A DNA stretch of 41,160 nt from assembly GCF_001194135.2 (NCBI RefSeq), contig NC_068998.1, positions 49,472,339 through 49,513,498 of the forward strand, read 5' to 3'. Positions 1,021-40,351 of the stretch are shown here, piece after piece. The translations under genes and the position numbers were made by a program. The number at the start of each line of letters is the position of its first letter. Positions within the stretch are counted from its first letter, which is position 1. The stretch is from Octopus bimaculoides. Its lineage: Eukaryota. The notes beneath the pieces were generated by a model. That model was not told where the DNA came from. It did no database searches and was given only the letters and a program-made list of their open reading frames with translations.

Positions 1021-1061
1021 TCACTGCTCAGGTTCAGAATATTCGTCACAATTAACCAGAC
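1021..1061 (-). CDS. Candidate terminal exon of paralogue 1 (LVNCDEYSEPEQ*); homologues at 11554-11594, 22774-22829 (1-nt deletion) and 29761-29801
   Basis: Conserved strong acceptor (tttttgtcacgttacag|G or close variant) in all copies; 41-nt phase-1 frame ending TGA in copies 1, 2 and 4; needs a phase 0-to-1 exon upstream (candidate 2105-2078). Confidence 0.35.
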
Positions 1062-2278
1062 CTGTAACGTGACAAAGATGTGTTCAATAGAGTGGTTTTA
1101 GCAGAGGCATTTTTTGTTCTTTGAAGTAAACTTGTAATTCGAAAGGCAATATTTAAGGAAAAAGTATTTGTTACTGCTATCTATGCGTTTTCTTGTGTTT
1201 TAACGGTCACCTCTTGAAAATCGTTGTTTGATTACCTCCCCGTATCATGCACCGTTTGAAAATAAATAAGTTGTTGGTTTCTTCTATAGAAGAAACAAGC
1301 AAATATGAAAAGGAATGCACATTTACATAACTGTGCTAATGTTGCTGTACAGTTCTTAAATATCACTCGCATTTTTATAGCTTACTTAGTGTATATCGCA
1401 ATAAAATTGTATTGGGAAGGGACCGATGTCATAAATAAATAAGCAATAGTAAAATAGAGACATTTATATTAAAATTGCAATAATTACCTAATGTTAAACT
1501 TTTTCCATCTGTTTAATTTTTCAACCGACGCGCTGAAACGAATATTTGATATATTAGGATTGATATTAATACCCTCTATTCCAATTTCATTAATTAGCTC
1601 CAGAGATGCTGTTATGAATTGAATAGAAGTTCCTTATACAAATATTTATGTGCTAAGATTTAACTGCCTGAAATTTAATGAGGAATTAATGCAGATACCC
1701 ATCTATTTCGTTATCGCGTTTCAGTTTTGCATAATACTGTTTAAATCGAAGCTTAATATAGTTTTTCATATTGTGTGTGAAATAATAAAAATAAAACAAT
1801 TGCAAGCGAAATATCAGAAAATTTGTTACTTCGGTTAGACAGAGAATATTTGATCGATGTGGTCCTATAGCCATTATAACATCCATTAGGTAACGTTTGT
1901 GCTCTGATTTAGAGACAAGAATCTGTACTATATGAGATCTAATTGACACACGCAATCGATTTAATGGAAGACCAATATTTCAATGATAAATATTGTTTCG
2001 GATTATGGGACAAAGCTTGTAGGATAAGAATTTCTATTTTGAAATCCCATGATGCTTGTGGACACTACTTGTGTTACTAGGTCTATTGTTTCGTAGAAGG
2101 TTTCTCTTGCAAACACAAATAACCATATACACTAAAAAAATGTCATGTTATGTATTACAAATATGAATTTCAGTTGAATGAAAGAGAAAAGTTAGTACGC
2201 TATCGTCTCATTGATTAAATTAATGTAAGTATCATTTATAATGAATTATGCAGAAACAATGCAAATTAAAGTAATTAC

Positions 2279-2372
2279 CTTAGGTAGGCATTTTGAAGTG
2301 AGCATGGTGTGAAACGTGACAGCACAGTCTCTACGAACGTCTTTCAGACAAAAATAATATTCAACCCAATGT
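2279..2372 (-). CDS. Paralogue 1 exon 3 (HWVEYYFCLKDVRRDCAVTFHTMLTSKCLPK)
   Basis: Acceptor ctttatcttacag, donor gtaatt, 94 nt in all four copies, W/C/C/C/P invariant. Confidence 0.88.
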
Positions 2373-4303: not shown

Positions 4304-4347
<44 letters not shown>

Positions 4348-4362
4348 AACAACAACAACAAC

Positions 4363-4401
<39 letters not shown>

Positions 4402-5714
4402 CATACGTACACGCATTCTGCACTAAGTGTTGGGGATGGCGTGATGGAAGTCGATTTATGCAGGCAATAAGTAGTGGCCAATCTACCGCACTCGGATAGC
4501 ACATCAGCAGCAGCACCTAAAGGATTTATTTAATTACTAATAATTAGTGATACACATACTGGGTGTGTAATCATTATGTTTAAAAAAGAAAGCAAAAATG
4601 AAAGAAAAATGCTGAAGCGTTAATGTAGAGCTAAATTCGGATCCGCGTTCTCTCAGTAGGCAATTATAATATGTGTTTCATGAATGATATCACTGTTGTT
4701 CTGATTCCGTTATAACTTCACAGGTGACGATGTCGTACGATTATTTGGTGATTCTTTACTACNNNNNNNNNNCGTTATAACTTCACAGGTGACGATGTCG
4801 TACGATTATTTGGTGATTCTTTACTACAAAATATTTGGAAGGTGAACATTTTTATAATTTTGTCATAGTCTTTTATTCTTTCATTCTATTATTTGTTTCC
4901 GTTATTAGAGTGCAGCCATGCTGGAGCACCACCTTTAGTCGAACAAATCGAACCCAGGACTTACTCTTTGAAAGCTTAGTACTCATCCTATCGGTCTCTG
5001 GCCTACGGGGATGTAAAGACGCCAATATCGGTTGTCAAGCAAGAGTGGCGGTGATGCGGGGGCAAACACAAACACTCAATTATGCACACATANNNNNNNN
5101 NNNNNNNNNNNNNNNNNNNNNNNNNNNNNNNNNNNNNNNNNNNNNNNNNNNNNNNNNNNNNNNNNNNNNNNNNNNNNNNNNNNNNNNNNNNNNNNNNNNN
5201 NNNNNNNNNNNNNNNNNNNNNNNNNNNNNNNNNNNNNNNNNNNNNNNNNNNNNNNNNNNNNNNNNNNNNNNNNNNNNNNNNNNNNNNNNNNNNNNNNNNN
5301 NNNNNNNNNNNNNNNNNNNNNNNNNNNNNNNNNNNNNNNNNNNNNNNNNNNNNNNNNNNNNNNNNNNNNNNNNNNNNNNNNNNNNNNNNNNNNNNNNNNN
5401 NNNNNNNNNNNNNNNNNNNNNNNNNNNNNNNNNNNNNNNNNNNNNNNNNNNNNNNNNNNNNNNNNNNNNNNNNNNNNNNNNNNNNNNNNNNNNNNNNNNN
5501 NNNNNNNNNNNNNNNNNNNNNNNNNNNNNNNNNNNNNNNATATATATATATATATATATATATATAACATCATTTCTATGTAATCATTTAATATATGAAT
5601 ATGGATTCTGTATTTTATACACCAGATGTAAATGTTATGAAAAACTGAAAAGAAAATATTTCAATATTGCAGCTTACCTCCAAAGAGAAGAAACACGAAG
5701 AATAAAGTTTTCAT
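2279..5714 (-). CDS. Paralogue 1 of a secreted 6-Cys small-protein family; join 5714-5678, 4516-4411, 2372-2279; 3' end unresolved
   Basis: Spliced translation MKTLFFVFLLFGGAAADVLSECGRLATTYCLHKSTSITPSPTLSAECVHWVEYYFCLKDVRRDCAVTFHTMLTSKCLPK. Splice sites GAG|gtaagc, cctttag|GT, GT|gtacgt, cttacag|A, AAG|gtaatt; phases 1 and 2 match. Signal-peptide-like N-terminus ending AAA. Exon 1 is linked across a 447-N gap. Confidence 0.8.
2920..3120 (-). mobile_element. tRNA-derived CORE-like SINE remnant; orthologous copy 31720-31905, fragment 13545-13580
   Basis: Minus strand reads ggagcgtggcttaatggttagtgtactcggctc (tRNA A-box-like head) and later ccttgagcaaggcc (CORE-like). Confidence 0.6.
3250..3450 (-). 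mobile_element. L1/Tx1-clade LINE RT fragment
   Basis: IHDKVHLTRYIIE...GALTDLDQSKSFD matches the L1/Tx1 RT motif (LDQxKAFDxV); same insertion point as 32100-32330. Confidence 0.8.
4040..4285 (-). mobile_element. L1/Tx1 APE-endonuclease fragment
   Basis: FLDIVGKLVVLDVSNSDGGAFRVLAAYAPTG resembles the APE NxYAP region. Confidence 0.75.
4290..4400. repeat. (AAC)n(AAT)n microsatellite next to the exon 2 donor; orthologous tracts 14710-14920, 25081-25130 and 37277-37335
   Basis: Read directly from the sequence. Confidence 0.95.
4411..4516 (-). CDS. Paralogue 1 exon 2 (GAAADVLSECGRLATTYCLHKSTSITPSPTLSAEC-V)
   Basis: Acceptor aaatcctttag, donor gtacgt, 106 nt, open, 3 Cys. Confidence 0.85.
4865..5090 (-). 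mobile_element. Octopus-type SINE 3' half in intron 1; orthologous copies 15270-15500, 25525-25715 and 37715-37945
   Basis: Motif catgctggagcaccgcctttagtcgaacaaatcga...cggttgtcaagcga with a (TATTCTTT)-like tail, recognised from memory as a high-copy octopus SINE; same position in all four genes. Confidence 0.65.
5678..5714 (-). CDS. Paralogue 1 exon 1 (signal peptide MKTLFFVFLLFG)
   Basis: ATG at 5714, 37 nt, phase-1 donor gtaagc; same length and donor in the other three copies. Confidence 0.8.
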
Positions 5715-5923
5715 GTCTTTTCTTTTACGCGTTAAAAGAAACGAATAGTGCTATAGCAATCAATAATGTTGTATTGTTACATGTAATGACATACAGTGTA
5801 ACATATGCGAGGCAACAGTAAAACAAAACAGCGTAATTCAATTAAGTCTGTCATATTAGATTAGAGAGAGAGACAATAGTTCTTTCGCCTGAAAACGACT
5901 TATGCGTAGATACGTAAATAAAA

Positions 5924-5967
5924 ACTTACAGTTGAATATTTATTTTTTCTGTTTAGATAATTATATA
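5924..5967 (-). promoter_or_regulatory. Conserved upstream block with TATA-like TATATAA (5967-5961) and a GTAAGT (5929-5924)
   Basis: TATATAA is present about 250 nt upstream of the ATG in all B copies; function not demonstrated. Confidence 0.3.
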
Positions 5968-6205: not shown

Positions 6206-6269
<64 letters not shown>

Positions 6270-6289
6270 ACAAATTATTATTATTATAA

Positions 6290-8150
6290 AAATCCCACAA
6301 AAACAACGTGTGACTGATGCCTGATCAACGGGGCAAGAGAACTTCTTATATTTCTTCGCAGGTGTACACTCAGAATTGATCATTTCACACTGGCCATTCT
6401 TCCAGCATTCACCCACATTTCAACAAACTTACAAGAAAGCAACACTTCCCTTTCCATCCTCAACTTTCTTTTCAAGTGAAACTTGAAAAAGTCGATGACG
6501 GCTAGGCCAAAAAGGAAAGTGCCTCCTTTAGACCTTCCAGACACGTCCGCCCTACTGCCTCTTTCGCTATAGCCACCAGAGAAATAATAACTGTCACCCG
6601 GCCAAAGGAGGGTGGTGAGGATATCCGCACTACGGATTCATCAGATAGCCGGTTCCGTTTCACATGCGACATAGGGTGTTCGACATAAACCCACATACCA
6701 GCAATACTCGGGCACTGGACGAAGTCGTGCAGAACGGTTTCATCGTTCTACACGCACCTCAGGCCGGCTCGGCTGACGGCACTTCCACGCCTGACAAGTT
6801 TATCCCAAGCAGACAGCGTCTTTCTGTTGCACCTTCCACAGAAAGCGGAAGAATAAGTGCACCTGCTTCGTCAACCAGCAAACGAAGCAAGGCATAACGG
6901 TCAAGCGGTAATAGATGACGGATACGAAGTACACATTCGCCACCTCTGCTCAACCTTACAGAGACAGCTTCGTCTCGGCCCATTTCTGTGTGTGATTGGA
7001 TAAGCTGTTCGTCACCAGATCCATCTATTTCTCCATCTGGATATCTGGACCGAAGCAGACAGTCTGTCCAGTATCCTACGATGGCTGTCCAGCGCCCTAC
7101 AACGACTTGGTGTTACAAGCCCACTGGCGTGAATTTTTGTTCTTATCACCGTTTCATATCCTTTCAGTGTGTGTCCAATGAGATCTATATGTCTCTGGCT
7201 CGATACTCTCACGGCGATATCATCAGAGTAAGCAGATACACTTCTCACACATCTTAAATCACACTGGACACCACTCAAAGCCTCCTACTTCAGCAGTAGT
7301 GATTCAAGTATCAGTTCATACCGAAGATATGAGAGAGAGAAACCTTGCCAGACCGAGCGCTAGATGCTGAATTATTCCAACCGGTGACCATTCAACCGAA
7401 CAACCGCACAGATATCAATGCAAAAAGAGATCCAACATCGGAAAGCCTGACCGAAACCGAGTATTGATTGTCGACGCCATAAACGGTTTTAGATTGATCT
7501 AAGTTGTTCAGAGTCCCACCCGTGTGAGCTTCGTTACCCACTATCTCACTCTGATGTAGCGACTGACGTAGTGGTTGTCCGGAATAGTCCTGGTTAGCAT
7601 GGCGCTTACGCCTAGCAAACGAGCTTGTCCACGACAAGAGCCAAAATCTTGGCTAATACATTGGCCAAAATCTTTAACCCTGCATGAAGCAAAGTGATGG
7701 GCCTGTAATTTTCTATAACGTGCCACCGCCTCTCGACATAGAAATATGAAAAATCTTCTATTCTGCTGCCAGTTGTAGTAGACGTCTGCAACGAGGACCG
7801 CAAATAAGTCTGGCATGGATATATAAAGCTGGTAGGGCAGACCGTCCAAACCCGTCTATATTACTCTCGTGTAACTCTTCAACGCTTCCTGTAAGACCGC
7901 GGCTGTTATTGGCCTTTCGCAGCAATCCCCTTTGCACGTAGAGAGTCACAGCAGGATGTCCAAGTGGCCACCGAAATCTACCCTGTTATCCGTTCTATCA
8001 TTCGTCCTGAACAGTCGAGAAAAGTACTGCTGAAAGCCGCATACGTCTGTTTTGCTTCGAACATCACGCGCTCGTTCTGGTCCACTAAAGACCGAATGTT
8101 GGCTTGTTGTCACGTTTTGTCTACGTCACTGGAGCACCTCGTGACGCTTC
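6290..8150 (-). mobile_element. Degraded L1/Tx1 LINE ORF2 (RT N-terminus and C-terminal CCHC region) with (TAA)n tail at 6208-6285
   Basis: DGLPYQLYISMPDLF, ENYRPITLLHAGLKILANVLAK, HDFVQCP..MWVYVE..LVAIAKEAV; frameshifts and stops. Confidence 0.88.
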
Positions 8151-9240
8151 TTTTCCTCAAACACACACACACACATGCGCGCGCGCGTGCGTTTTTGGCG
8201 ATGAATTCTAAGCGTACAAAGACGACTTAAAGAAGAAGAATTGGAGTTACTGATTTTAAATGGTTCAATATTTCGTGATCCTCTCATTTTATTGTGAATA
8301 TTCATAAATGTAAATTGTACATAAGGGTGTCCTATATTATTCTTAGGTCATATCGAACAAAATTACTAAATACATTCACTGATGTAATCTCCTCTCGCAA
8401 CCATAAATATTTTCGTTCCTTTTTGAATATATACATAAATAAATTTAAACATATGAGTTGAGCTGGATTTGAAACTGGATAGTGATCTCTGAATTCTATT
8501 CAATCATTTGATTGTGAAAAAAAAAATATGAATTTTAGAATAGGCCTTGCTGATAGAATCATGCATTTAATTATTTTTTTATTTAAAAAATCTTTTTATT
8601 TGTAGGCCCATTAAATTTATTCCGTACTCACCATATATAAGTGTTCTTTTTCCTGTTCTTTTAATAATAATGAGGGATTACCAGATCGGGGACCCACAAT
8701 GGTGGAGACAAAGTTTTGGTTTCGATAAAGGGGTCACTGCTAATTTGGTGTTTTAGTGTGTAATGGATTGTAGCATCTGCTCTTGAAACGGCCGTAGACG
8801 TGGATTTATTCTTACATTATTCTGCATTCCTTTTCCTTTTGGACTTGCCCATGGATGATATCTCGCATTCACATTGCATTTAGCAGTCTAACTATCTTAT
8901 TTTTCATCGCGTCGCTATACACAATCATATTTTCTTCATATATATATTCGTTTCTTCTTCATACACTTTCATACAGGTTTTCACAAGTTCTTTTATAGGT
9001 GAAAATATATGTATATGTTAAGCCTTCTGGCTCTGGGTGCGGTATATTAACATGCATTTATTTTCTACATTGTAAATATGTAGGTAGGATGTGAAGATGT
9101 TTCACCAATTATAGTGGTTAATTTTCAAACAAAATATATATAGATATATCACATATATAGATATATCACAATCATTTCTATGTCATCATTTAATATATGA
9201 ATATAGATTATGTATTTACACATCAGATATATATGTTATG

Positions 9241-9270
9241 AAAAACTGAAAATGAAGAATAAAGTTTTCA
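9241..9270 (-). pseudogene. Truncated duplicate of exon 1 (MKTLFF..., donor deleted)
   Basis: Same flanks as 5570-6150, but about 44 bp containing the last codons and the gtaag donor are missing. Confidence 0.7.
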
Positions 9271-9879
9271 TGTCTTTTCTTTTATGCGTTAAAATAAATG
9301 AATGGTGCTATGACAATCAACAATGTTATGTTCTTATATGTAATGCTTTACAGTGTAACACATGTCAGGCCGCAGTAAAACAAAACAACCACATACAGTT
9401 AAGACTGTCATATTAAATTTCAGAGCAACAATAGTTCTTTCGCCTGAATATTTAATTGTCGAATAACGATTTATACGTGGATGTATAAATAAAAACTTAC
9501 AGTTGAAAATTTCTTTCTTTCTTTAGAAAATTATATAACCTGTATTCAATAAACTGAAGCATAATTCCTTTCTGGAATGTTTATCCCCATTTTTTTTTCA
9601 TTCGTTTCTCATATTACAGTGCGACAATGCTGATGCACCAAAATGAAGGATTTACGAAACAAATCGGCCTGAGTACTTATTTCTTAAGATTATACCGTGT
9701 CTATTGTCTCTCCCACTATTTACCCTACGTCCTCAAATCTCTTACCGACCGAAAGAAGCATAGTTTAAATGAAGAATTTAATCCCTGTTGCAACTATTAT
9801 TATTATTATTACTATTATTATTATTTTATGTTTGACTTTTGTTTTGCATTTGTACACGTTGGATCCAAGTCTCACCCAG

Positions 9880-10856: not shown

Positions 10857-12905
10857 TGAGTTTATTTCAGTTTCCGCTGACAAGCGTCTCTCGAATCGGG
10901 ACGAAATCTTTCGTGCAATGGGACTGAAATTGTAACCAAATGTATTGTTTCCACGCACTAAAGTCCGCAGTTGTGTTGAAATTTATTTGCATTCGTCCGA
11001 TTTTAAAGTTTTGTTTTGTCCTTTGTAAACATTTCATAGGATTTTCTTAATTATCTCTCACTCCTTTGTGATTGTAACAGTATTAACGTGTTGAGTAACA
11101 TGACCGTACAGACAAGAGACTGTGGCATTATATCCTGCTCACCGAAAATATATTCGTGGAATGTTTCATAAATCAAATCGATTCTTCGAGTTTCATATAA
11201 AAAGTAAACTTTTATGTCGAGGAAAGCATTTGTGTAAACATTTAAATGGGTTCCTAATACGTCAACGGACAGGTATACATGATTTTAATACGTTTCACAC
11301 AAACATAGTATCTAACAATTTGACGGTAGCTCTGCAAACAATACCCTCTAGCAATCTCCTTGCACCCATTTGAGAGAAGAAATGAAAAGTTAATAAAGTT
11401 GTTCTTGCTACAAATTTATTGTTTAACATTTAAAAAATTAACTTACGATAGTTAATCATTTCGTGATACATGTTTTCTTTTACAGCTGAATTTGAGATAA
11501 AACAAGAAGAAAACAGTTTATATATCTTTAATATTATTTAATAATGAGGAACTTCACTGCTCAAGTTCAGAATATTCGTCAGATTTCACCAGACCTGTAA
11601 CGTTATAAAAATGTGTTCAATAGTGTTTTTAGCAAAGGCATAATTTGGTTCTATGAAATAAACATGTAATTAGAAACGTAATATTTAAGGAAAAAGTATT
11701 CGTAACTGATTTCTTTGGGAGTTCTTGTGTTTGAAATCTCACCTCTTGCAAACCGGTGTTTATTTGTTTACATCCACGTGTCATTCGCAATTTGACAAAT
11801 TGCACCGATAGAATAAATACTGGGGTCGTTTTCTTCTGCAGAACCCTTAAATGCATACCCCCAACATGACCACAGTCCTACGAAAGAAACAAGCAAATAT
11901 GAAAAAGGAAGGAACAACTACATTACTGAGCAAAATTTGCTGTACAGTTCTTAAATATCACTCGCATTTTATATAGCTCACTTCGCGTATATCATACCAG
12001 GATTGTATTGGGACTTGTTCGATGTCATAAACAAATAATATGCAATAGTAAAATAGAGACATTTATGTTAAAATTGCAATAATTACCTAATTGTTAAACT
12101 GCTTCCATCAGCTTAATTTTTCAACGGAGGCGCTGAAACAAATATTTGATATATTAGGATTCATATTAATACCCCCTATTAAAAGTTCAATTTTTATCTC
12201 CAGAGATACTTTTATCAATTGGATACAAGTTCATTATACAAATACTTATGTGCTACGTTTTAAGTAACTGAAATATAATGAGGAATTAATGCAGATTTCT
12301 ATCTATTTCGTTATTGCGTTTAAAATTTGGGTGATGCTGTTTAAATCGAAGCATAATATAGTTTTCCTTCTTTTGTGTGAAATTCAAAAAAAAATTGCAA
12401 GCGAAATATCGGAAAATTGTTGCTTCGATTACACACAGAAAATTTGATCGATGTGCTCATATTACCACTTTAACATCTATTACCTAACATTTGTGTACCG
12501 AGTTAGAAACAAGAATCGGTATTATACGAGATCTAATTGATACAACAGTATAAGTGTACAGCATTTTGTTGTCATGCGCAGTCGATTTAATGGAAGACAA
12601 ATATTTCAATGATAAATATTGTTTCGGATTATGGGACATACCTTGTAGGATACGAATTTCAATTTTGAAATACCATGATGCCCATGGACACTATACGTGT
12701 TACTAGGTCCATTGTTTTGGGGAACGTTTCTCTTGCAACAACTTATAACCACTATCATTACAAAAAATGTCATATTATGTATTACAAATATGAATTTCAG
12801 TTGAATGAGAGAGAAAAGTTAGTACGCTATCGTCTCATAGATTAAACTAATGCAAATGTCATTTAGAATTAATTACGCAGAAAGAATGGAAATTAAAATA
12901 ATTAC

Positions 12906-12999
12906 ATTAGGTTGGCAGTTTGAAGTAAACTTTTTGAGGAAATTCTGAGCACATTCTGTATTCAAGTCGGTTAGACAAAAAGAATTATAAATCCAATTT
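12906..12999 (-). CDS. Paralogue 2 exon 3 (NWIYNSFCLTDLNTECAQNFLKKFTSNCQPN)
   Basis: Acceptor ttatcttacag, donor gtaatt, 94 nt. Confidence 0.88.
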
Positions 13000-14709: not shown

Positions 14710-14761
<52 letters not shown>

Positions 14762-14826
14762 GTAACAGTAATAATAATAATAATAATAATAATAGTAACA
14801 GTAATAATAATAATAATAATAGTAAC

Positions 14827-14899
<73 letters not shown>

Positions 14900-15587
14900 G
14901 TAATAATAATAATAATAATACGTACGTGCATTGTGCACTGTATAACGATGTAACGGTAGACCTCTCTTTAGTCATGCAAAGACTAGCGACCAAAAGACCG
15001 CACTTGTATGGCGCTGCAACACCTAAATGATTTACTTATTTAATTAATAATAATTAATGGTACATATAATATACTAGGTTCTACAACATTATATTTAAAA
15101 ATAGAAGCGAAAACAAAGCAAAAATAACGAAGAGCTTATATAAAGCTAAATTCGGATCTCCATGTTCTCAGTATGCAATTATATGTGTTTGATGAATGAT
15201 GTCAATCTTGTTCTGCTTCCATTATGACTTCACATGTGACGATGTGGTACAATTATTTGGTATGTCATATTCTTTAATTCTTTTATTCTTTTATTTGTTT
15301 CAGTCATTTGTGTGTAGCCATGCTGGAGCAGCGCCTCGAATCGAACAAATCGAACCCAGGACTTTTTCCTTGTAAGCCCAGTACTCATCTTTTGCAGAAC
15401 CGCTAGCTTACGGGGATGTAAACACACCAACAACGGTTGTCAGTCAATAGTGGGTGTGGGGGAACTAACACAAACACACGAACATGCACTCGCACAAACG
15501 CACACACACTGACACATACACGACTGTTTTTTTTTTCAGGTTCCGTCCATCTAATCCACTCACAAGGCTTATATATTTATACACACA

Positions 15588-16464: not shown

Positions 16465-16891
16465 GTTGGTTTTTTTTTCTTCTTTCTTCAAATTTTCTTC
16501 CATTTCTCGCCGAGTGTTTTCCGTACACCAAGGGCAGAGAAACTCNNNNNNNNNNATGTATTTAAAAAATAATTTAAAAAAATTCATGAATGGATGTTGT
16601 TTCCACAGCGATAATGCTATTCTCAGTACATGAGTCGTTCCAGTTAACACGATTTTTTTCACTTCCTGTAGGGATGGTAAGCCTGGTATCATTTTCAAAT
16701 AGGCTTCAGTAACTTTTTTTAACATTCCTAGAGATCCTACAATCACTGGTACGGTAGTCGCCTTGAGGTGCCACATGTTTTCAATTTCTATTAGCAAGTC
16801 TTTATATTTACTTATCTTGTCAAATTCTTTCGCCGCTATATTATAATCACAGGGAATACTCATGTCAATTAATAAACACGTCTTCTTTCTC

Positions 16892-18774: not shown

Positions 18775-19239
18775 GACTTTTCTTTTATGCGTTAAAATAA
18801 ACGAATGGAGTTATGTCAATCATGAAAGTTATATTGTTACATGTGATGATATGTAGTTTAACATACGCCAGACACCAGTAAAACAAAACAGCGCAAATTC
18901 AATTAAGACTGTCAAAATAAATTACAATGCGACAATAGTTCTTTCGCCTGAATACATAATAGTCGAATAACGATTTATACCTGGATACATAAATAAAAAC
19001 TTACAGTTGGATATTTATTTCTCTCTTTAGATAATTATATAACCTATAGTCAATAGATCTTAAGNNNNNNNNNNNNNNNNNNNNNNNNNNNNNNNNNNNN
19101 NNNNNNNNNNNNNNNNNNNNNNNNNNNNNNNNNNNNNNNNNNNNNNNNNNNNNNNNNNNNNNNNNNNNNNNNNNNNNNNNNNNNNNNNNNNNNNNNNNNN
19201 NNNNNNNNNNNNNNNNNNNNNNNNNNNNNNNNNNNNTTG

Positions 19240-24109: not shown

Positions 24110-24203
24110 CTCAGGTCTGCATTGAGAAAGAAACCTTTTGTGGAACATCCCAGCACAGTCATTATGCAACTTATTTAGACAAAAAAAATGATAAATCCAA
24201 CCT
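24110..24203 (-). CDS. Paralogue 3 exon 3 (GWIYHFFCLNKLHNDCAGMFHKRFLSQCRPE)
   Basis: Acceptor ttatcttacag, consensus donor GAG|gtaagt, 94 nt. Confidence 0.9.
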
Positions 24204-28636: not shown

Positions 28637-29112
28637 GTCTTTTCTTTTATGCGTTAAAATAAACGAATGGAGTTATGTCAATCATGAAAGTTATATTGTT
28701 ACATGTGATGATATGTAGTTTAACATACGCCAGACACCAGTAAAACAAAACAACGCAAATTCAATTAAGACTGTCAAAATAAATTACAATGCGACACTAG
28801 TTCTTTCGCCTGAATACATAATAGTCGAATAACGATTTATACCTGGATACATAAATAAAAACTTACAGTTGGATATTTATTTCTCTCTTTAGATAATTAT
28901 ATAACCTATAANNNNNNNNNNNNNNNNNNNNNNNNNNNNNNNNNNNNNNNNNNNNNNNNNNNNNNNNNNNNNNNNNNNNNNNNNNNNNNNNNNNNNNNNN
29001 NNNNNNNNNNNNNNNNNNNNNNNNNNNNNNNNNNNNNNNNNNNNNNNNNNNNNNNNNNNNNNNNNNNNNNNNNNNNNNNNNNNNNNNNNNNNNNNNNNNN
29101 NNNNNNNNNNNN

Positions 29113-29405
29113 CATAGCCCCTCGACATAGAAATGTAAGAAATGTTCTATTCTGCTGCCAGTGGCAGAAAACGTCTGCTAAGAAGGGCGCAAACAAGTCT
29201 GGCATGGATATATACATCTGGAAGCGCAGACCGTCCAAACCCATCCATCTTACTCTCGTGCAGCTCTTCAACACTTCCTGTAAGACTGCTGCTGTTATTG
29301 GCCTTTCGCAGTACTCCGCCTTGCAAGTAGAGAGTCGTGGTAGGATATCCAAGTGGATACCGAAGTCTGCCCTGTTATCCGTCCTACCATTCATCCTGAA
29401 CATTC
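29113..29405 (-). mobile_element. L1/Tx1 fragment, apparently identical to 19349-19641
   Basis: The ORF track gives the same translation at both loci. Confidence 0.85.
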
Positions 29406-31037
29406 AACTTACAGTTGGATATTTATTTCTCTCTTTAGATAATTATATAACCTATAATCAATAAACTGAAAGATAATTCCTTTGTGGAATGTTTATCCCC
29501 TTTTTTTGTTATTCGGTGTTTGATATTACAGTGCGACCAATCTGGGGCGCAATAATGAAGGCTTTATTAAACAAATCGACCTCAGTACTTAGATTTTAAG
29601 ACTTGTACTGACTCTATTGTCACTTCAACTATATACTGTACACTCATTTCGTGATATATCTTTTCACTTACAGCTGAAATTGAGATAAAACAAAAGGAAA
29701 ACAGTTTGCATGTTATATACTTCTTTATATATCTTTAATATTATTTAATAATGAGGAAGTTCACTGCTCAGGTTCAGAATATTCGTCAGATTTAACCGGA
29801 CCTGTAACGTGACAAAAATGTGTTCAATAGAGTGGTTTTAGCAGAGGTATTTTTTATTCTTTGAAATAAACATGTAATTCTGATATAAGCGTAATATTTA
29901 GTGGAAAAAGTATTTTCAACAGATTTCTGGGCGAGTTCTTGTGTTTGAAACCCCACCTCTTGAAAACAGGATTGTTTATGTTTACATCCCCGTATTATTC
30001 GCCATTTAAAAACTGGTACCGATAGAATAAATACTGGGGTTGTTTTCTTGTGCAGAACCCTTACAGTGGTACCCCCAACATGACCGCAGTCCTACGAAAG
30101 AAACAAGCAAATATGAAAAAGGAAGGAATTAAATTACTAAACAAAATTTGCTGTACAGTTCTTAAATATCACTCGCATCTTATATAGCTTACGTAGTGTA
30201 TATCGTACCAGGATTATATTGGGACTTGTTCGATGTCATAAACAAATAATAATCAATAGTAAAATAGAGACATTTATATTAAAATTGCTTTAATTACCTA
30301 ATGTTAAACTGCTTCCATCACCTTAAGTTTTTCAACGGATGTGCTGAAAAGAATATTTGATATATTAGGATTCATATTAATACCCCCAATTACAACATTT
30401 GTTTTAGCTCCAACGATACTTTCATCAATTGGATTCAAGTTTATTATACAAATATTTATGTGATAAGTTTTAACTACCTGAAATATAATGAGGAATTAAT
30501 TCAGAATCGTATCTATTTTATTATCCCGTTTAAATTTTGTTTTTTTACATAATACTGATTAAATCGAGTCATAATCTTGTTTTTCTTATTGAGTATGAAA
30601 TTATTAAAAATAACAATTCTAAGCAGAATCTCCTATTACTACTATGCTCCTGTTACTACTAAAACATCTATTAGCTAACGTTTGTGTACTGAGTTAGAAA
30701 CATTTTCTTGTCATGCGCAGTCGATTTAATGGAAGACCAATATTTCAATGACAAATATTGTTTCAGTGTATGGGTCAAAGCTTTTAGGATACGAATTTCA
30801 ATGTTGAAATACCATGATGCCAGTGGACACTGCACGTGTTACTAGCTGCATTGTTTCGTGGAAGGTTTCTCTTGCAAAAACTAATAACCAGTTAATACAA
30901 AAATGTCATGTTATGTATTACAAATATGAATTTAAGTTGAATGAGAAAGGTTAGTACGCTATCATCTCACTGATTAAACTAATGTAAGTATCATTTAGAA
31001 TGAATTATGCAGAAAAAATGTAAATTAAAATAATTAC

Positions 31038-31131
31038 CACAGGAATGCATTTAGAAGTATACAGGTTGTGGAAATAGAGAGCACATTCTATCCGCACATC
31101 TACCAGACAATCATAATAATAAATCCAATGT
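31038..31131 (-). CDS. Paralogue 4 exon 3 (HWIYYYDCLVDVRIECALYFHNLYTSKCIPV)
   Basis: Acceptor ttatcttacag, donor gtaatt, 94 nt. Confidence 0.88.
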
Positions 31132-34100
31132 CTGTAAGATAAATACAACAAAAGGATATTCATTTCGGTTAAAAGGAAATCGTTTATCAAGAATCTTGCA
31201 CACGAAATACACATACGAAGTTTATCAACATCCATGTCAAGAAATGGTAGAACCTTACTTCTCGGACTACGGGAGCCTACCATTCTTATATCGGTGCTTG
31301 GCAGTGCTTACTATTACCTGAATATAAAGCATATACTGATTTACATTGAAACGAATTCTTTTGGAACCCGAACGTTTTCTGTTTTACGTGCAATTTTTTA
31401 ATGATTGGCTTAATTTGTAGACTTGAACACTTTCTATATTTGTCAGAACACTTTTATTGATTGCATAGCTACTGACATAACAAAAACGACGAGAAACAGG
31501 TGGTACATTAGATAAAGTAATTTAGAATAATTTCTAAAGGCTATGATTTTAATAGGTATTAACCATAACTATAATTATCCACTCATAAGTTTTGGTATTT
31601 AAATAACTTCGAAATTTCAAAGCCATTCGTATATTTAAACCTTCGATGATCGGAAGAATTTTCGAACCAATGGAACAAATAAATTTACGAACGGTATAGT
31701 TAAATCGTTTCAGTGATTTGACTGTGAGTATGCTTGGACAACTGAAAGCCAAATAGAAACTATGCCTTATATTCGCTCGCTGAGTAGATTGGATCAACGG
31801 GAAAAAAAAAGTCCTGCTCAAACGCACAACGCTCTGCCGACTATAGCCTTTTGGACCTTACGATTATGAGCCGAGCATATTAACCAGTAAGCCACGCGCC
31901 TTTCTGAGTACAAACCATTTCGTAAATAAACATTCCCCAGAAGAATCCGATCATAGAAAAATACTTCAATATAGAGACGATTTAATTGTCCAGCAACACA
32001 TTTTGCTGTGTTCTGGTACCGTATGGGTATCCCCCGTATGGTGATAATAAATAACGTTATAAATAGTTAATTACAAACATCATAGTTTATCGTAATATTA
32101 AAGGTAATAACAAACATTGTGTTTGCTGCCGTGTAAACAGGTTCCAAGTATTAGTGTTCCACCCTATCAAAACATTTCGATTGATCCAAATTGGGGAGGT
32201 CACGAACCATGCCAGGTTCCTTACCAACCCACTCTATGATGTCGTGCGTGAGGTGAACTTTGTCAAGGAGAGAACTGTTTGGAGTAGCACATGGCGTCAC
32301 TAACCAACTTATTGACGACAAATGTCAACGTTTTGGCTAACACTGTATAACCTTATAAGCTACATACAGCAGAGTTATATGCCTAAAATTATCAATTTTG
32401 TCTCGCTTATTCGGCTCCTTCCTCAGCATCACAACTACTTCATGGCTTACAGCACTGGGGATCCTCCCATCCTGCTACCAGTTGTGGTAGACGTCAGCCA
32501 AGAGTCTACCCAACATGTCTGGCATATGAAAACAAAACTCGAAGGCCAGTACATCCCGCCACGGAGACTTCTCTCTTGCGCAGCCCGTCATCACATCCCA
32601 TATGTCTTTGGCTGTTATCAGTATTTCGCAGAAAACCGCATCCCTGTCTGAGAGGCGCGCCATGCTACTGAGATACGATCTGAAATCCACAACCGTCCCA
32701 CAACCACATCGCGCTCCTTACAGTTCGGTGAAATGCCACTGAAATTCCGCACAGTTTTCCTTGGTTATCATGCGCCCGTCACAGTCTCCATAGACTGAAT
32801 TGTTGCTTTGTGTCTACGTAGTACCTCTACCACCCAGGCCCATTGGCTTTCGTCCCCTCCCGTCTCAGTGAACGTGCGCTAGCTTTGACAACGTAACCGT
32901 CGTACTTGGCATTGAAGAACCGATGAAGAATCAATCTCGTAACAAGTATCGCCGGCCGGTATTCCTTTCTTAAGCTTCTCTTCTAACTCCCTAATTAGGT
33001 CTCTCTCTGTCCTAGATTCCTCTTGCGCTAACTAAAAAACTTTCTCCTCTACTCTAATAGCCACTTTCAATGCTATCAACCATCCGTTGTTGACTATTGT
33101 TCTCGCCAACTCTCTATAGACTAACTTAATAACCCTGCCCTGTCCATGAAAGCTTGGAGCGCCGGGAAAGACCCCTTCAGTTTCCATTATCCGGGGCACT
33201 GTCTATGGATCACATGTATGTCATCCGTAAAGATAAAAAAATTATGGTTCGTGTAACCAACTACTGTGAAACGGAGAAAACTTATACTACTTCTTTCTAC
33301 AAGCCTACAGAATACTCTATCGAGATATCATCTGGAAGACCATAAGCAGTTCGTCCATCTTCGCATTGGCGCAATCAGGAAATCCAGTCAACTAACTGAA
33401 AACAACTGAGCTAGACTTTCCCTATCCTGGCGTGAGTCCAAGAGGGCATTCAAATCACACACTAATATCCAAGGAAAAGCTCCAGATGTATGACGATATC
33501 TGGATGCCCCACCCCTGTGGGGGTCTAAACATCAGCTATTCTAAAGACAGCACCTTCACTGTTACTCGGGTCCACGACATATATCGTAACCTCCGAGTCG
33601 AGGAAGATCATTCGAACTTCGATATCCCGGCCTTTTCTGAACAACAGTGCCAGTGCACCTCTCGTTCTGGGCTGACTAACAGATATGTAGGTCTCACAAT
33701 CGTCGAAAATGGGTAGAAGATCGGGTGTATCCGAATTTCCGGTCTCACTGGTTGCTATCACATCGAAACCTAGTGATCTGAGGTCATTGAGCAATCTATC
33801 TTGCTTGCAGGATGATCTCAGAACGCGAACATTTATGCAGCCCACTCTGACAAACTCTATGACGGCTCGAAAGGGTTAATGAAGCAAAAAGTGTGGTGTT
33901 ACTTACTTTCTTGATGTTGTTGGCAGCCCGACGATCCGGGATCCAGATCTCCGTCCTCTGGAGAACCGGCTAAATGATTCTTCGTGGCGCGGATATTTGG
34001 CCTTCCCACCTCATGCAGGAAATTCCTCTGAATTTCTTTGTATGTTTCGAGGAGTAGGCGAATCAACATTTAATAGTCTGGAGCTCTAGAGCTACTGGTG

Positions 34101-37100
34101 TTGTAAATTGCTCCCACTCTCTCAATCACCTCGTTTCTAGCTTTGAGAACCAACAAATTTTTGTTGGCTCCCCTTCATAAGCATGTCATTCGGTGTTTCC
34201 GTATTGGTGACTGAGCTTGGGGGTTACGTGTGGTGACTACGTGTGGGCGTGAATGCATTGATGGACTTAGTTGGCGTAGTGGTGGTTGTAGGGATGTTGG
34301 TGCTTGTATTGTTTCTGTTGAGTCCATGTTCGATGTACTGGGAGTTTCTGGGTTTTGACTAGTTGGTTTAGGTTCCTCTGTTTTCTTTTTCCTATGTCGT
34401 TTACGTTTCTTTTTGCCTTGTAAGTTTCTTTCCTGCCTTCACTACGGGATGGTGAGGGTCTAGTCTCTGGAAGATCTGTCTCGAGGTGTTAATGTGTCTG
34501 TGCTAGTCTTAACGTTTTTCTGTGAGTGTATGCTTGAGCGAGGTGGGTTAGACAGATATCCTGAGTGGTGTCCTCCATTGAATGGGGTTCTCATGCCTGT
34601 ACTGTTGCTGGAGATGAGGCTTCCGTTTCATTAAAAGATTTCGGTTGTTGCTGGTGATGCGATATTGGCTGCAGATGTGTCCGCGTACCACACATCGTTT
34701 TGGGGCAGAAGGTGTCCAGGTAGTTTGTGGGGCTACAGATGTCGCATCTGAATCACCTGCTTTCCATGACGAGACTCAGTTCCAGTCCGTTCGCAAATGG
34801 ATCTGGTCCGGGTTCTTCTCGATATCTAGTTTTACATGGATTCATATTTCGAAGTTGATCCCACACCAGTTCTCCTTGCTACTCCATTTAACGTGCAGGC
34901 GGAACTTTGGATCCTTCACGGCACAGGTGCAAATCCAGCAGACGTTTATACCCATTGGCACGCCATTTACCCAAATTCTGGTAGTTATCCTTGAGAGCCA
35001 GGTGGGATATTGGACTCACTCTTCGGTCCACCGGGCTGAGACTACCTGTCTTCGCGCGAGGTCCGCGATTTTAAAGGGGATCTCAATGCTGACAAACTGC
35101 CTCTCTATCTGTATATGCGCCACATCTATGAACATTTTTCTGTGGACTTTCTCAACATGACTGATAGAATCAATTTCAGCCGTCTTACTTCTTCTCTATT
35201 GCCTCTATTATTTCGGTACGTGCACTACCTCCTTACCTCATCAAATCTAATGATGTCTTTCACTTTTGAGAGTCCACGGGTTTTTTTGTTATTGAGTGTG
35301 ATGGCAACCATTTCTCTCGTGGTGTTCGCTACATCAACAAACATATTTGTTTTGTTTTTGTTGTTGTCGTCATCGTTGCTCTTGTCATTGTTGTTACTGC
35401 TATGCTATTGTTGATGGTGGTGGAGTTGTGGCCAATTTCCCTGTTGCCACTCTCACCACAATTGCCACCGCTATATCCTTCAGCCTTCAATTCTATCATT
35501 ATTTTTCCTCTTAACATCCGTAGCATTATTAACGAAAATACTATCGCTGCTACCACTGCCAATCCCATCGCTTTTGCTGATAGCGTATGAGATAGCGTAA
35601 AAGAGAGAACAGCATGGGAAAGTGGGCTACAGGCAATATAAGCCCACTACGCATGTAAGACACTAGGAGCTCCAACAAAAATTTTGTGATAAAGAGAAAA
35701 AAAGACATAATAATAATAAGAAGAATAGTAGTAGTAGAGGTAATAATAATAATAATAACAATAATATTAATAATTCATTCTTTATTAGACACAATGCTTA
35801 CATATAACAACATAAAATGACGTGTGACACAACATAAAACACATGGCGAGACAGTGTTTCACAGTATGTAAACATTTCAAGACAAAGAAATAAACAACAA
35901 GAATCTCCTAATAGGGGAGGCTCTTTAAAGATCCTCATGGGAAACCCCACAAAAGCTATGGGTACCTCATCAACAGGGTAAGAGCCATTCCCATTTTATT
36001 TATTCGGATGTGTACGCTCAGAATTGGTCCTTTCACACTGGCCATTCTTCTAAACTTTACCCACTTTTCAACAACCTTACTAGAAGGCAACACTTCCTTC
36101 TCCACCCTCAACTTCCTTTTAAGTGAATCTTGAAAAAGTTGATGAGGGGATTGGCCAAAGAAGAAATAGTCTGACTTTTGCCTTTTCAGACATGTTCACC
36201 ATACTACATTTTTCGCTACAGCTACCAGAAAAATAAAAACTGACTTCCTTTCCCGGCCAAAGGAAGGCAGCGGGGAAATCCACACTATGGATTCAGCTGA
36301 CNNNNNNNNNNNNNNNNNNNNNNNNNNNNNNNNNNNNNNNNNNNNNNNNNNNNNNNNNNNNNNNNNNNNNNNNNNNNNNNNNNNNNNNNNNNNNNNNNNN
36401 NNNNNNNNNNNNNNNNNNNNNNNNNNNNNNNNNNNNNNNNNNNNNNNNNNNNNNNNNNNNNNNNNNNNNNNNNNNNNNNNNNNNNNNNNNNNNNNNNNNN
36501 NNNNNNNNNNNNNNNNNNNNNNNNNNNNNNNNNNNNNNNNNNNNNNNNNNNNNNNNNNNNNNNNNNNNNNNNNNNNNNNNNNNNNNNNNNNNNNNNNNNN
36601 NNNNNNNNNNNNNNNNNNNNNNNNNNNNNNNNNNNNNNNNNNNNNNNNNNNNNNNNNNNNNNNNNNNNNNNNNNNNNNNNNNNNNNNNNNNNNNNNNNNN
36701 NNNNNNNNNNNNNNNNNNNNNNNNNNNNNNNNNNNNNNNNNNNNNNNNNNNNNNNNNNNNNNNNNNNNNNNNNNNNNNNNNNNNNNNNNNNNNNNNNNNN
36801 NNNNNNNNNNNNNNNNNNNNNNNNNNNNNNNNNNNNNNNNNNNNNNNNNNNNNNNNNNNNNNNNNNNNNNNNNNNNNNNNNNNNNNNNNNNNNNNNNNNN
36901 NNNNNNNNNNNNNNNNNNNNNNNNNNNNNNNNNNNNNNNNNNNNNNNNNNNNNNNNNNNNNNNNNNNNNNNNNNNNNNNNNNNNNNNNNNNNNNNNNNNN
37001 NNNNNNNNNNNNNNNNNNNNNNNNNNNNNNNNNNNNNNNNNNNNNNNNNNNNNNNNNNNNNNNNNNNNNNNNNCAAAATTCTCAGAGGAAAATATTTGGT

Positions 37101-37284
37101 AAAACGGGGTTACCCGAAAAGGGGGCCTTATTTCAATAAAAAAATATAAAAACTAGCTCTCTATCCGAGCAGACAGCTTGAAACAAAAATTAAACAATAA
37201 AAACAAAAGTTCAACAATTTGTGACAACGAAATTTCAAACAACTTTAGGAGCGCCAAAACGTGTAACTCACCGCAAGCAGCAGC

Positions 37285-37317
<33 letters not shown>

Positions 37318-38936
37318 AATAATAATAATAATAATACGTACACGCATTGTGCATTGACTATTGGAGATTTATAGTTAGCTCTCGTTGAATTCGTGCAATA
37401 ATCAACAGCCAAATCATCACATATGGGTAGCGCAGCAGCACCTAAAAGATTTATTGTTTCATTTACTGATAATTTGTGATACAGGGTGTATAATCGATTT
37501 GTTTCATTAAGAAAGAGCTAATACCGAAGTGTTAATGTAGAGCTAAATTCGGATTCCCATTCTCACAGTAGGCAATTATAATATGTGTTTCATGAATGAT
37601 ATCACTGTTGTTCTGATTCCGTTATAACTTCACAGGTGACGATGTCGTACGATTATTTGGTGATTCTTTACGACAAAATATTTGGAAGGTGAACATTTTT
37701 ATAATTTTGTCATAGTCTTTTATTCTTTTATTTATTTCAGTCATGTGAGTGCAGCCATGCTGGAGCACCGCCTTTAGTCGAACAAATCGAACCCACGACT
37801 TATTCTTTGTAAGCTTAGTACTTACCCTATCGGTCTCTTTTGCAGATCCGCGAAGTTATGTGGATGTAAACACAGCAACATCGGTTGTCAAGCGATAGTG
37901 GGGGGACAAGCACAAATGCACAAACATACACACACACGCACACACACACGTTTATATTTATACGAGAGGCTTCTTTCAGCATTGGCGTCTGGCGGGCTTT
38001 TGACAGGATGGAAGCGGATTGAAGGAACGCTGCTGAGTGTAACTGCGTGTCTATATACACCATGTGTATGAACATGTGGTTATGTGAATGTGTTATTGGT
38101 TTCATGTGTAAGTACGAGTATAGTGAGCGTAGTAATTTGAGTGCCTTAGTGTTCGTTGTATACGCATGCATGCTCGAACGTGTCTAAAGTGCATACGTGG
38201 TGTAGTGTGTGGAAGTATGTACGCTCTTGCGTTTGTACATAAATACTTGAGTGCATGATTGTCTGGAAAAACGTATGCCTGCTTGTGTTTTGTCTTGTGT
38301 GTGCAAGTGAGTACACACACATACATACATACATACATTCATACATACATACATACATACATACACACGCACACGCACACACATATAAATGATTTGTTTT
38401 CGGCAGATGAATGCTTAGAGTACATAAACGACTTGAAAACGAATGAGAGTTACTATCCTAAATGGTGCAATATTTCGGGATCCCCTCATTTTCTTCTAAA
38501 TATTCATGAATATAAAATATGCAGAAGTGAGTTCTATATTATTCTTATGCCATACAGACCAAAATTATTAAATAAATTCACTAATATAATCCTATTTTGC
38601 AATCAATTTATTTCGTTCATCTTTGAATATATACGAGAGCATGTATCCCTGCCCCGTAAAATTCTGTTGACTATTCTTTGAGACACTTCTTCACTACAGT
38701 TTTCACTTCCTCGTCACTGGAATAATGTTTGCTTCTCAATTCCTCTCTGAAGGCACTAAATCTGGTGAGTGTGGAGGTAGGGACGAGATGTCTCAAAGAA
38801 CAGTCAACAGAATTTTACGGGGCTGGGATAAATGCTCTCATTCTAAGGCGAAACATTGCTATTGAGAAAATCGTTGAGAAGTAGGGATGTAATCCACTGA
38901 AGACCACCTTCATTTTGATATATGATACATACATAT

Positions 38937-39005
<69 letters not shown>

Positions 39006-40351
39006 NNNNNNNNNNAATTAAGAGGGTAAAGGATTATCAATTTATTAATTAATAAATTGATAATCCTTTACCCTCTTAATTTGTAATAATTATTCACTCC
39101 CAGTTAGTATACGCAGATTCTCTGCGATATCACTTGTCGCGCACATGGTAATTTCTTGAGGGAAGGACAGTTAGACTGGCTGACCGAGGTGGATTCGGTT
39201 ATGCTTTCAGACCTGTGTCGGTGTGGAATATTAATCGTCCATGCTTACACGGTTTGCTAGCATAGTCAAATCATAGTCCAGAAACGCGACTACTGTTAAA
39301 CGTCGGAATTGGTTAGTTTTTCATTGTTTTTTTCTTCTTGTTTTTGCCTTTGTGAGTTACAAGTGATGCTATCTGTGGGATTCTCAGCTTTTTTAGCTGC
39401 TATTTCTGAACTTCGGTATATGGTGAAGCAAATATTTGCTGATCCCTTAATTATATTTATAAATATATATATATATATATACATATATACTTATAATTAC
39501 CTGCGTTGGTAATTATACCTGTCCTAAACAAGATGGCATTACTTTTTGACTCACCCTTGTACAAAAATAAAATTACATGACTTCGTTCTTAAACTGGGTA
39601 GTGATTTCTGAATTCTAGCCACACATTTGATTGTTATAAAATATTATGAACTTTCCTTAGGCTTATTAATGTTTTATTCCGTACACACCCGGTATAAATG
39701 TTCCATTTTTTTGTTCTCGTAATAATAAGGATGGATTACCCGAACGGGAACCCTGATGAAGATATATTTTTTGTCCTGATGAAGGGGTCACTGTCGATTT
39801 GGTGTTTTAATGTGTAATGGTATGCGGCAGTGGCTCTTGAAACGGCCGTAGACGTGGATTTATTCTTTAATGATTCTGTATTCCTCTTTCTTTTGGACAT
39901 GCCGATGAATGTTATCCAGGATTCTCTTTCCATTTAACAGTTTAAATATCTTATTTTTCATCGCCTCGCTATATACATTCATAATTTCTTCATATATGCG
40001 TTTCTTCTTCATACAGTTTCTTACAGGTTTTCACACATATTTTTTTATATGTGAAAATAAATGGATATTTTTATACCGTCGGTTTTCGGTGCGGTATCAT
40101 CACATGTATTTATATTCTACGGTGTGAAGATATGGATACGATTTGAAGTTGTTTGACCAATTATGTTGATTAACTTTTAACCGAATATGTTATATATAAA
40201 TATAACTTCATTTGTATGTAATCATTTAGTATATAAATATAGCTTCTCTATTTACACAGCAGATGTAAATGTTATGAAAACCAGAAAATAAAATATTTCA
40301 ATATTTCAACTTACCTGCAACGAGGAGACAAAGGAAGAATACAGTTTTCAT
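31038..40351 (-). CDS. Paralogue 4; join 40351-40315, 37441-37342, 31131-31038; 3' end unresolved
   Basis: Spliced translation MKTVFFLCLLVAGAAALPICDDLAVDYCTNSTRANYKSPIVNAQCVHWIYYYDCLVDVRIECALYFHNLYTSKCIPV; intron 2 expanded to about 6.2 kb by LINE sequence and a gap. Confidence 0.83.
32100..35560 (-). mobile_element. 3'-truncated L1/Tx1 element with ORF1 (degenerate CCHC knuckle), APE endonuclease and RT start
   Basis: CDICSPTNYLDTFCP near 34710-34750; MGCINVRVLRS...DVIATSET at 33845-33740; endonuclease C-terminal remnants 33170-33340; LDGLxFE-like and LDQSKCFD; many stops. Confidence 0.85.
35760..36300 (-). mobile_element. 3' end of an L1/Tx1 element with 3' UTR, AATAAA (35786-35781) and (TTA)n tail
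   Basis: Homologous to 6350-6620 (ORF2 C-terminus); runs into a 772-N gap. Confidence 0.8.
37342..37441 (-). CDS. Paralogue 4 exon 2 (GAAALPICDDLAVDYCTNSTRANYKSPIVNAQC-V)
   Basis: Acceptor aaatcttttag, donor gtacgt, 100 nt, open. Confidence 0.85.
38639..38835. repeat. Inverted repeat (47-bp arms 38639-38685 and 38789-38835, 3 mismatches), MITE-like hairpin
   Basis: gcatgtatccctgccccgtaaaattctgttgactattctttgagaca versus the reverse complement of the right arm. Confidence 0.85.
39016..39081. repeat. Perfect 66-bp palindrome
   Basis: 33-bp arm aattaagagggtaaaggattatcaatttattaa is directly followed by its reverse complement; abuts a 10-N gap. Confidence 0.9.
40315..40351 (-). CDS. Paralogue 4 exon 1 (MKTVFFLCLLVA)
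   Basis: 37 nt, CAG|gtaagt consensus donor. Confidence 0.85.

Follow-up and report, generated by a model that had tools for sequence, protein, structure and literature searches.

Introduction

Orphan families of cysteine-rich secreted proteins that are organized in tandem arrays are common in molluscs. Among the closest described systems are the conotoxin superfamilies of cone snails, small secreted disulfide-rich mollusc peptides with multiple paralogs, in which a conserved signal and Cys framework are combined with hypervariable residues between the cysteines. Conotoxin genes consist of few short exons with long introns between them, their coding exons diverge faster than the surrounding non-coding DNA, synonymous sites included, and a pattern of the intron homogenization type has been described for them. 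Snake venom phospholipase A2 (PLA2) and three-finger toxin genes likewise form tandem paralogs in which exons change faster than introns and untranslated regions (UTRs) and non-synonymous divergence (dN) equals or exceeds synonymous divergence (dS), a mode termed 'accelerated evolution of exons'. The Aplysia attractin and Euplotes Er pheromones are fast-evolving secreted proteins of about 40-60 residues with six Cys in three disulfides and two to three alpha-helices. The mammalian secretoglobin/androgen-binding protein clusters are tandem arrays of rapidly diverging paralogs; each gene specifies a small, helical, secreted protein from three short exons, the first of which holds most of the signal peptide. 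Here we describe a locus that resembles each of these systems in part. It lies in a 41,160-nt stretch of the Octopus bimaculoides genome (contig NC_068998.1, positions 49,472,339 to 49,513,498, forward strand; hereafter the window), and we consider it likely to be a tandem array of four intact genes and one remnant that would encode secreted helical six-Cys mini-proteins with diversifying exons.

There are also differences from the described systems. With conotoxins there is no sequence similarity; the mature part predicted here is longer (about 60 residues), has no obvious propeptide or dibasic processing site, and its fold is predicted to be all-helical and not knot-like or of the small-loop type. 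The folds and lineages of the snake toxins are unrelated, so that the likeness is one of evolutionary mode only. Attractin and Er pheromones differ in Cys spacing, the attractin motif IEECKTS is absent, and neither sequence nor Foldseek searches give a match. Compared with secretoglobins, there are six Cys instead of two or three and three predicted helices instead of four, Pfam Uteroglobin is not matched, and nothing in the octopus genes points to dimer formation.

In cephalopod salivary glands, 44 superfamilies of highly expressed secreted proteins have been described, 27 of which are short and of unknown function, many of them without homologues outside Cephalopoda, and tandem arrays are described for one of the gland superfamilies (10.64898/2026.02.02.703354).

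Gene structure

Exons were located by a six-frame pattern search for the Cys motif, reading of the flanking DNA and an exact search of the window for the resulting exon strings. Each half of the motif turned up exactly four times, always on the minus strand. A first-pass annotation of the same stretch had proposed four minus-strand copies of a gene with exons of 37, 97-106 and 94 nt, and this is what we find. The four genes are named A to D:

Gene A exon 1: 5678-5714, minus strand, 37 nt
Gene A exon 2: 4411-4516, minus strand, 106 nt
Gene A exon 3: 2279-2372, minus strand, 94 nt
Gene B exon 1: 18738-18774, minus strand, 37 nt
Gene B exon 2: 14926-15022, minus strand, 97 nt
Gene B exon 3: 12906-12999, minus strand, 94 nt
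Gene C exon 1: 28600-28636, minus strand, 37 nt
Gene C exon 2: 25135-25234, minus strand, 100 nt
Gene C exon 3: 24110-24203, minus strand, 94 nt
Gene D exon 1: 40315-40351, minus strand, 37 nt; ATG and 12 codons of the putative signal peptide, ends in phase 1
Gene D exon 2: 37342-37441, minus strand, 100 nt; end of the putative signal peptide, Cys1 to Cys3
Gene D exon 3: 31038-31131, minus strand, 94 nt; Trp, Cys4 to Cys6 and C-x-P, ends in phase 0 on GTAATT

The proposed GT/AG borders and compatible phases hold throughout: all 24 splice dinucleotides are canonical (12 acceptor AGs and 12 donor GTs), and exons 1, 2 and 3 end in phases 1, 2 and 0. An AT- or pyrimidine-rich tract precedes the acceptor AGs, and the donors read GTAAG after exon 1, GTACGT after exon 2 and GTAAKT after exon 3. 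Each ATG is preceded by an in-frame stop 39 nt upstream. The spliced frames comprise 79 (A), 76 (B), 77 (C) and 77 (D) codons, in line with the 76-79 residues of the first-pass annotation; however, exon 3 ends in phase 0 at a GT without a stop codon. The frames are thus open for want of a stop, the gene models lack their 3' end, and 76-79 residues is only a lower bound. The lengths of exon 2 (106, 97, 100 and 100 nt) differ by multiples of three only; indels in the aligned non-coding DNA are of arbitrary length.

The genes sit in a segmental repeat whose units follow one another in tandem every 10-11 kb or so. All units are head-to-tail on the minus strand, and the cluster of four described previously has to be extended by a dead fifth copy, psi-A, with a broken exon 1 at about 9235-9271. 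The window contains nine runs of N, most of them placed within (AT)n, (AC)n or (GT)n tracts. All are intronic or intergenic, the nearest lying 139 nt from any exon, and no reading frame spans an assembly gap. For genes A, B and D only intron lengths and the linkage and order of exons depend on scaffolding, while in gene C no gap interrupts the stretch between exon 1 and exon 3, so that one complete copy is available as continuous sequence.

In all four genes intron 2 starts with GTACGTAT, followed by an (ATT)n-type microsatellite. This (ATT)n/(GTT)n tract begins 8-10 nt into the intron and runs for about 50-210 nt (4304-4401, 14710-14922, 25078-25131 and 37285-37338); its position has been kept across the duplications despite the very different lengths. 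Exon-like relics of exon 2 or exon 3 elsewhere in the window were not found by tBLASTn. Stretches of high apparent divergence in intron 1 were considered as coding exons and rejected, being non-homologous insertions.

Divergence and selection

Between paralogs, exons 2 and 3 differ at 33-39% of sites (0.33-0.39 per site). For the flanking non-coding DNA the figure is 11-19%, over about 930 aligned nt drawn from the promoter, the two ends of intron 1, intron 2 at its 3' end, and the 340 nt that follow exon 3. The ratio of exon to flank divergence is 1.8-3.0 in the six pairs, with Fisher p values from 8e-6 to 2e-13. By the Nei-Gojobori method, pairwise dN/dS amounts to 0.93-1.73 in the mature part, compared with 0.49-1.07 in the signal part. 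Although identity between the mature parts is no higher than 31-48%, none of the four copies departs from the six Cys, the Trp or the C-x-P motif. The non-synonymous rate exceeds the neutral rate on a conserved scaffold (dN 0.45-0.61, compared with 0.11-0.19 for the flanking non-coding DNA), a contrast that gene conversion of the introns could inflate. When neutral drift was simulated at the observed divergence, frame, six Cys and Trp were retained with p 0.004-0.014 per lineage, and with p <1e-5 for three or four independent lineages. Exons 2 and 3 are selected, fast-diversifying coding exons and not decaying ones, because on a scaffold that does not vary they evolve more quickly than the introns of the same genes, even if gene conversion may add to the difference.

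Predicted protein

The pattern C-x7-C-x15/16-C-x2-W-x5-C-x7-C-x11-C-x-P, reported as invariant in the first-pass annotation, is indeed present in all four spliced frames. Further invariant residues are M1, K2, T3, F6, L9, L10 and A15, together with positions occupied by L, A, F, S and P. The N-terminus has the look of a signal peptide, as had been noted before: in all four sequences MK is followed by a hydrophobic stretch of 9-10 residues (TLFFVFLLF or TLLFLCLLF) and then by small residues (G/S-A-A-A/E). A cleavable signal would be expected to show a positively charged N-terminal residue, a hydrophobic core of eight residues or more and small residues at -3 and -1. In gene B a Pro would stand at position +1 of the cleavage site. 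Net charges counted from the sequences are small (about -2 to +2), so that a classical cationic antimicrobial peptide is not suggested, and dibasic pairs are not conserved, so that there is no sign of prohormone processing.

AlphaFold2 was given the four-sequence alignment. For mature A it places helices at residues 2-14, 29-41 and 46-59 (best predicted local distance difference test score, pLDDT, 79.9; predicted TM-score, pTM, 0.62; two of five models above 75). For C the same three helices appear at the aligned positions with lower confidence (best pLDDT 64.9). Both models are all-helical and without strands, which agrees with the earlier suggestion of a helical bundle rather than a knottin or three-finger fold. 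Each helix bears two Cys, or one and a second just past its end, a placement that fits a disulfide-stapled three-helix bundle with putative disulfides.

Searches for relatives

The first-pass annotation could not match the proteins to a named family, and our searches give the same picture. In Pfam-A, three of the four precursors have no family at E <= 10, and gene C has two chance-level matches only (E 0.1-0.15), far below the cut-offs. A sequence-profile search of the PDB gave no chain at E <= 10. Foldseek against the PDB returned unrelated proteins (best E 3.7, probability 0.18), a weak negative for a model that is short and of moderate confidence. A word-indexed protein search of 5.8 billion clusters with the four-sequence alignment found no match. 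A HMMER scan of 1.84 billion representatives found a single one, a 44-residue tandem-repeat open reading frame (ORF) from a JGI metagenome (P0001), which we regard as spurious (hhalign probability 8%). Metagenome contig DNA was scanned with an exon-1 pattern (no matches) and an exon-3 acceptor pattern (20 chance matches, none of which encodes the Cys motif). None of the four signal-peptide strings occurs in the literature text searched, and literature keyword searches revealed no family with the six-Cys scaffold of genes A-D.

Several known folds were considered and rejected. Knottin, Kunitz and three-finger proteins would be expected to have a beta-strand core and a characteristic Cys spacing, and the all-helical models and the lack of a Pfam match speak against them; Kunitz domains moreover have the spacing C-x8-C-x15-C-x7-C-x12-C-x3-C, which differs from the C-x7-C-x15/16-C-x8-C-x7-C-x11-C of genes A-D. 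Saposin-like proteins (SAPLIP) have six Cys in an arrangement of about C-x2/3-C...C-x10-C...C-x5-C and four or five helices; here SapB of Pfam is not matched, the spacing does not fit and three helices are predicted. The CHH/ITP neurohormones and the helical toxins derived from them (Pfam Crust_neurohorm) follow C-x16-C-x2-C-x12-C-x3-C-x8-C, again a misfit, and without a Pfam match. Attractin-type pheromones, of about 58 residues with six Cys, a helical hairpin and the conserved IEECKTS motif, do not fit either: none of the four sequences contains that motif and the Cys spacing differs.

How much these negatives weigh was judged with a control query. A transposon ORF of the window (16604-16863, minus strand), a sequence expected to be present many times in the host genome, retrieved only two ENA metagenome ORFs among the 5.8 billion clusters; host sequence is thus nearly absent from the collections searched, and the homology negatives are weak. 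The transposon-type ORF occupies 16558-16863 (minus strand; MSIPCDYNIAAKEFDKISKYKDL...) inside intron 1 of gene B and is interrupted by a 10-N gap at 16546-16555. An ORF on ENA metagenome contig ERZ22665968 (locus L001) shares 79% identity with it, and this contig is presumably host DNA that was present in the sample.

The control bears directly on the strongest alternative, namely that the family is real but has already been entered, with an uninformative name, in transcriptomes or annotations of cephalopods or molluscs, for example as a salivary or venom-gland family. We give this somewhat less than an even chance. The poor retrieval of the control leaves room for it, and so does the number of short secreted gland superfamilies, 27 of 44, that have no known function (10.64898/2026.02.02.703354). 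On the other side stand the empty result among 5.8 billion clusters, the sole and repetitive HMMER match and the lack of the signal-peptide strings in the literature text.

The 3' end of the genes

Three continuations past exon 3 can be envisaged. Without further splicing, all four genes read V-[IS]-[IT]-L-I-x-I-x-S-A and then TAA, and an ATTAAA follows about 315 nt past exon 3. It is the sole polyadenylation-type hexamer retained in all four genes, a weak indication in a region that is conserved as a whole and AT-rich. Alternatively, exon 3 could be spliced to a conserved ...GTTACAG acceptor that lies 1.2 kb further downstream, and the short candidate terminal exon behind it adds, in phase 0, 18 (A), 2 (B), 4 (C) or 18 (D) residues. 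Thirdly, if a second AG inside this candidate terminal block were used, a TGA would follow exon 3 immediately (A 1023-1021). Position 1021, the lower bound of the feature in the first-pass annotation, is the end of this TGA; the conserved block that contains it is 1.26 kb downstream of gene A's third exon. The elements concerned are:

Read-through tails (10 hydrophobic codons and TAA): A 2246-2278 (VITLICIVSA), B 12873-12905, C 24077-24109, D 31005-31037, minus strand
ATTAAA hexamer: A 1960-1965, equivalents starting at B 12591, C 23803 and D 30730, minus strand
Candidate terminal exon after ...GTTACAG: A 1005-1061, starts at B 11594, C 22829 and D 29801, minus strand

Under any of these options the six-Cys domain would be complete and at most a short tail would be added, which makes it unlikely that we are looking at exons of a larger protein. 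In that model the three exons would be the 5' part, followed either by more coding exons in each unit or, as in the protocadherin or UGT1 loci, by constant exons that all units share and that lie past the window's low end. The phase-0 end of exon 3 on a good donor (GTAAKT) without a stop would suit it, and the array may run past both window ends. However, unit homology ends about 1.5 kb past exon 3, where the upstream region of the next unit begins. Within these 1.5 kb a sliding-window scan shows no second hypervariable island, there is no long frame, and each conserved candidate acceptor reaches a stop within 0-18 codons in most copies. The protocadherin-like version was rejected on splice phase and unit boundaries: the acceptors of the downstream units would have to be skipped, and their phases are wrong (1 and 2 versus 0). 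We therefore regard a larger protein as very unlikely.

Every unit also contains a fragment past exon 3 that resembles a short interspersed nuclear element (SINE), at 11737-11878 (B), 22969-23112 and 29951-30092, and shortened in A (1205-1284). It is more variable than its surroundings and carries frame-breaking indels. Since it is present in every unit it is older than the duplications, and we take it to be similar to an abundant octopus SINE. As a coding exon this variable block was rejected, given indel lengths not divisible by three, frames that are inconsistent and its look of an old SINE.

Upstream region and the fifth copy

Each ATG is preceded by a conserved block of about 250 nt. In psi-A, B and C it contains a TATAAA 30 nt before an initiator-like TCAGG, and this TCAGG precedes the ATG by 174-176 nt:

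Gene B putative core promoter: 18949-18980, minus strand, TATAAA and TCAGG (A at 18949), 175 nt before the ATG
Equivalent putative initiator-like sites: C 28811, D 40525 (box TATAGA), psi-A 9445, A 5890, minus strand
psi-A, remnant of a fifth copy: 9171-9475, minus strand, broken exon 1 at about 9235-9271 with ATG at 9271

Judged by these consensus elements, each gene appears to carry its own promoter. In gene A, the neighbour of the dead copy, the box reads CATAAG and 16 nt are lost between box and initiator-like TCAGG (region 5860-5960, minus strand); this gene may be poorly transcribed or may use another start. psi-A has kept the upstream block, its TATAAA and the ATG undamaged, and a deletion of about 45 nt took the 3' half of exon 1 together with its donor. 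There follows a stretch of about 1 kb with homology to the beginning of intron 1 in the other copies (8190-8392, 8714-8904), and tBLASTn of the window found no exon 2 or exon 3 downstream.

Upstream of genes B and C, a block of 295 nt is 100% identical (19349-19643 versus 29113-29407), and each copy directly adjoins an assembly gap (19065-19236 in B, 28912-29112 in C). The promoter regions of B and C (18704-19003 versus 28566-28865) differ by 1.5%, compared with 5-30% in the remainder of both units. The identical block reflects either very recent gene conversion or an assembly artefact through collapsed or copied sequence.

The dead copy and the damaged promoter of gene A raise the question whether the whole array consists of decaying duplicates or never-expressed sequence, with open frames that are merely residual. 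A dN/dS close to 1 would also be compatible with this. However, neutral sequence would diverge like the introns and not about twice as fast, and neutral decay would not keep four frames, 24 Cys, four Trp codons, 24 splice dinucleotides and indels restricted to multiples of three. Pseudogenes are thus, in our judgement, a very improbable explanation.

Repeats and further features of the window

Over most of its length the window is AT-rich (G+C about 31-37%), microsatellites are abundant, and fragments of long interspersed nuclear elements (LINEs) and SINE-like fragments are common. That the repeated exons themselves belong to a transposable element or satellite can nevertheless be dismissed almost completely, since their peptides match no Pfam family, they occur as one copy per 10-11 kb unit in fixed order and orientation with spliceosomal introns, and the recognizable transposon fragments are intronic and differ between units, as does the LINE in intron 2 of gene D. 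This intron is longer by about 5 kb, a G+C-richer (43-45%) insertion at about 32000-36300. Within it a degenerate ORF (33525-33845, minus strand) has a weak match to the endonuclease/exonuclease/phosphatase family (E 0.008); we read the insertion as a decayed LINE accounting for the extra length.

A repeated ORF-bearing block (...YISMPDLFA...WQQNR.F...FLCR...) lies upstream of genes A, B and C (7541-8018, 19325-19643 and 29113-29403). One copy has a weak, sub-threshold match to DUF1264 (E 5e-4), and the block is probably a further transposon fragment within the repeat unit. A 10-N gap at 4763-4772 has a direct duplication of about 55-65 nt on both sides (ggtgacgatgtcgtacgattatttg...; 4708-4885) and looks like an unmerged contig overlap rather than missing sequence. 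Rfam and tRNA scans of the window found nothing. Homology between repeat units reaches about 300 nt from the low end of the window (1-300) and into its high end (40600-41160), and because it runs nearly to both ends, further gene copies may lie beyond them.

Discussion

We show here that the octopus window contains a tandem array in which the exons outpace the introns on a fixed Cys scaffold, and the reading as a family of secreted mini-proteins is the one we favour. Several points weigh against it. The frames lack a stop and the 3' end is ambiguous among the three options given above. Values of dN/dS near 1, taken alone, are the neutral expectation, and the pairwise values are given without a significance test. 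Synonymous divergence (0.29-0.49) likewise lies above intron divergence; gene conversion that homogenizes the introns, with converted exons rejected by selection, may therefore account for part of the contrast. The implied 5' UTR contains three to four upstream ATGs. A pLDDT above 70 is reached by only two of five AlphaFold2 models for A and by none for C.

On the favoured reading, each gene would be transcribed from its own promoter and three short coding exons would be spliced, possibly together with a short terminal exon. The product would be a precursor of about 80 residues, the first 16-17 of which would form the signal peptide, made up of MK, a hydrophobic core and small A-x-A residues. 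On entry into the secretory pathway the signal would be cleaved and a compact disulfide-locked helical mini-protein released, for which about 60 residues, three alpha-helices and three disulfides are predicted. The scaffold of six Cys, one Trp and a few Leu, Ala, Phe, Ser and Pro would be held fixed, while the other residues seem to be driven apart between paralogs. Such a combination would be the mark of binding to varied or co-evolving partners, be it prey, pathogen targets or conspecific receptors. Our best guess is that the proteins act extracellularly as ligands or effectors, be it as toxins, in host defence or as chemosignals, without a ranking of these roles.

A more far-reaching proposal is that the genes form an unannotated, lineage-restricted three-helix, three-disulfide family with a fold absent from the PDB, whose mature-peptide exons are hyper-diversified, synonymous sites included, within a gene-converted array. 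This would be a conotoxin-like mechanism in another molluscan lineage, acting on a helical scaffold, and possibly a new class of toxin or chemosignal. It is a tentative idea, and we would sooner doubt it than rely on it.

Current understanding is not overturned by this locus, as such families are common in molluscs. It is a clean example of exons outpacing introns, and it bears on the diversification of venom-like and recognition families. Genes with exons of 37-106 nt are missed by ORF-based scans, and small secreted proteins are therefore probably undercounted in such genomes. If expressed, the family would supply a compact helical scaffold, locked by disulfides and with surfaces that vary naturally, of use as a ligand library and as a candidate family of toxins, antimicrobials or pheromones.

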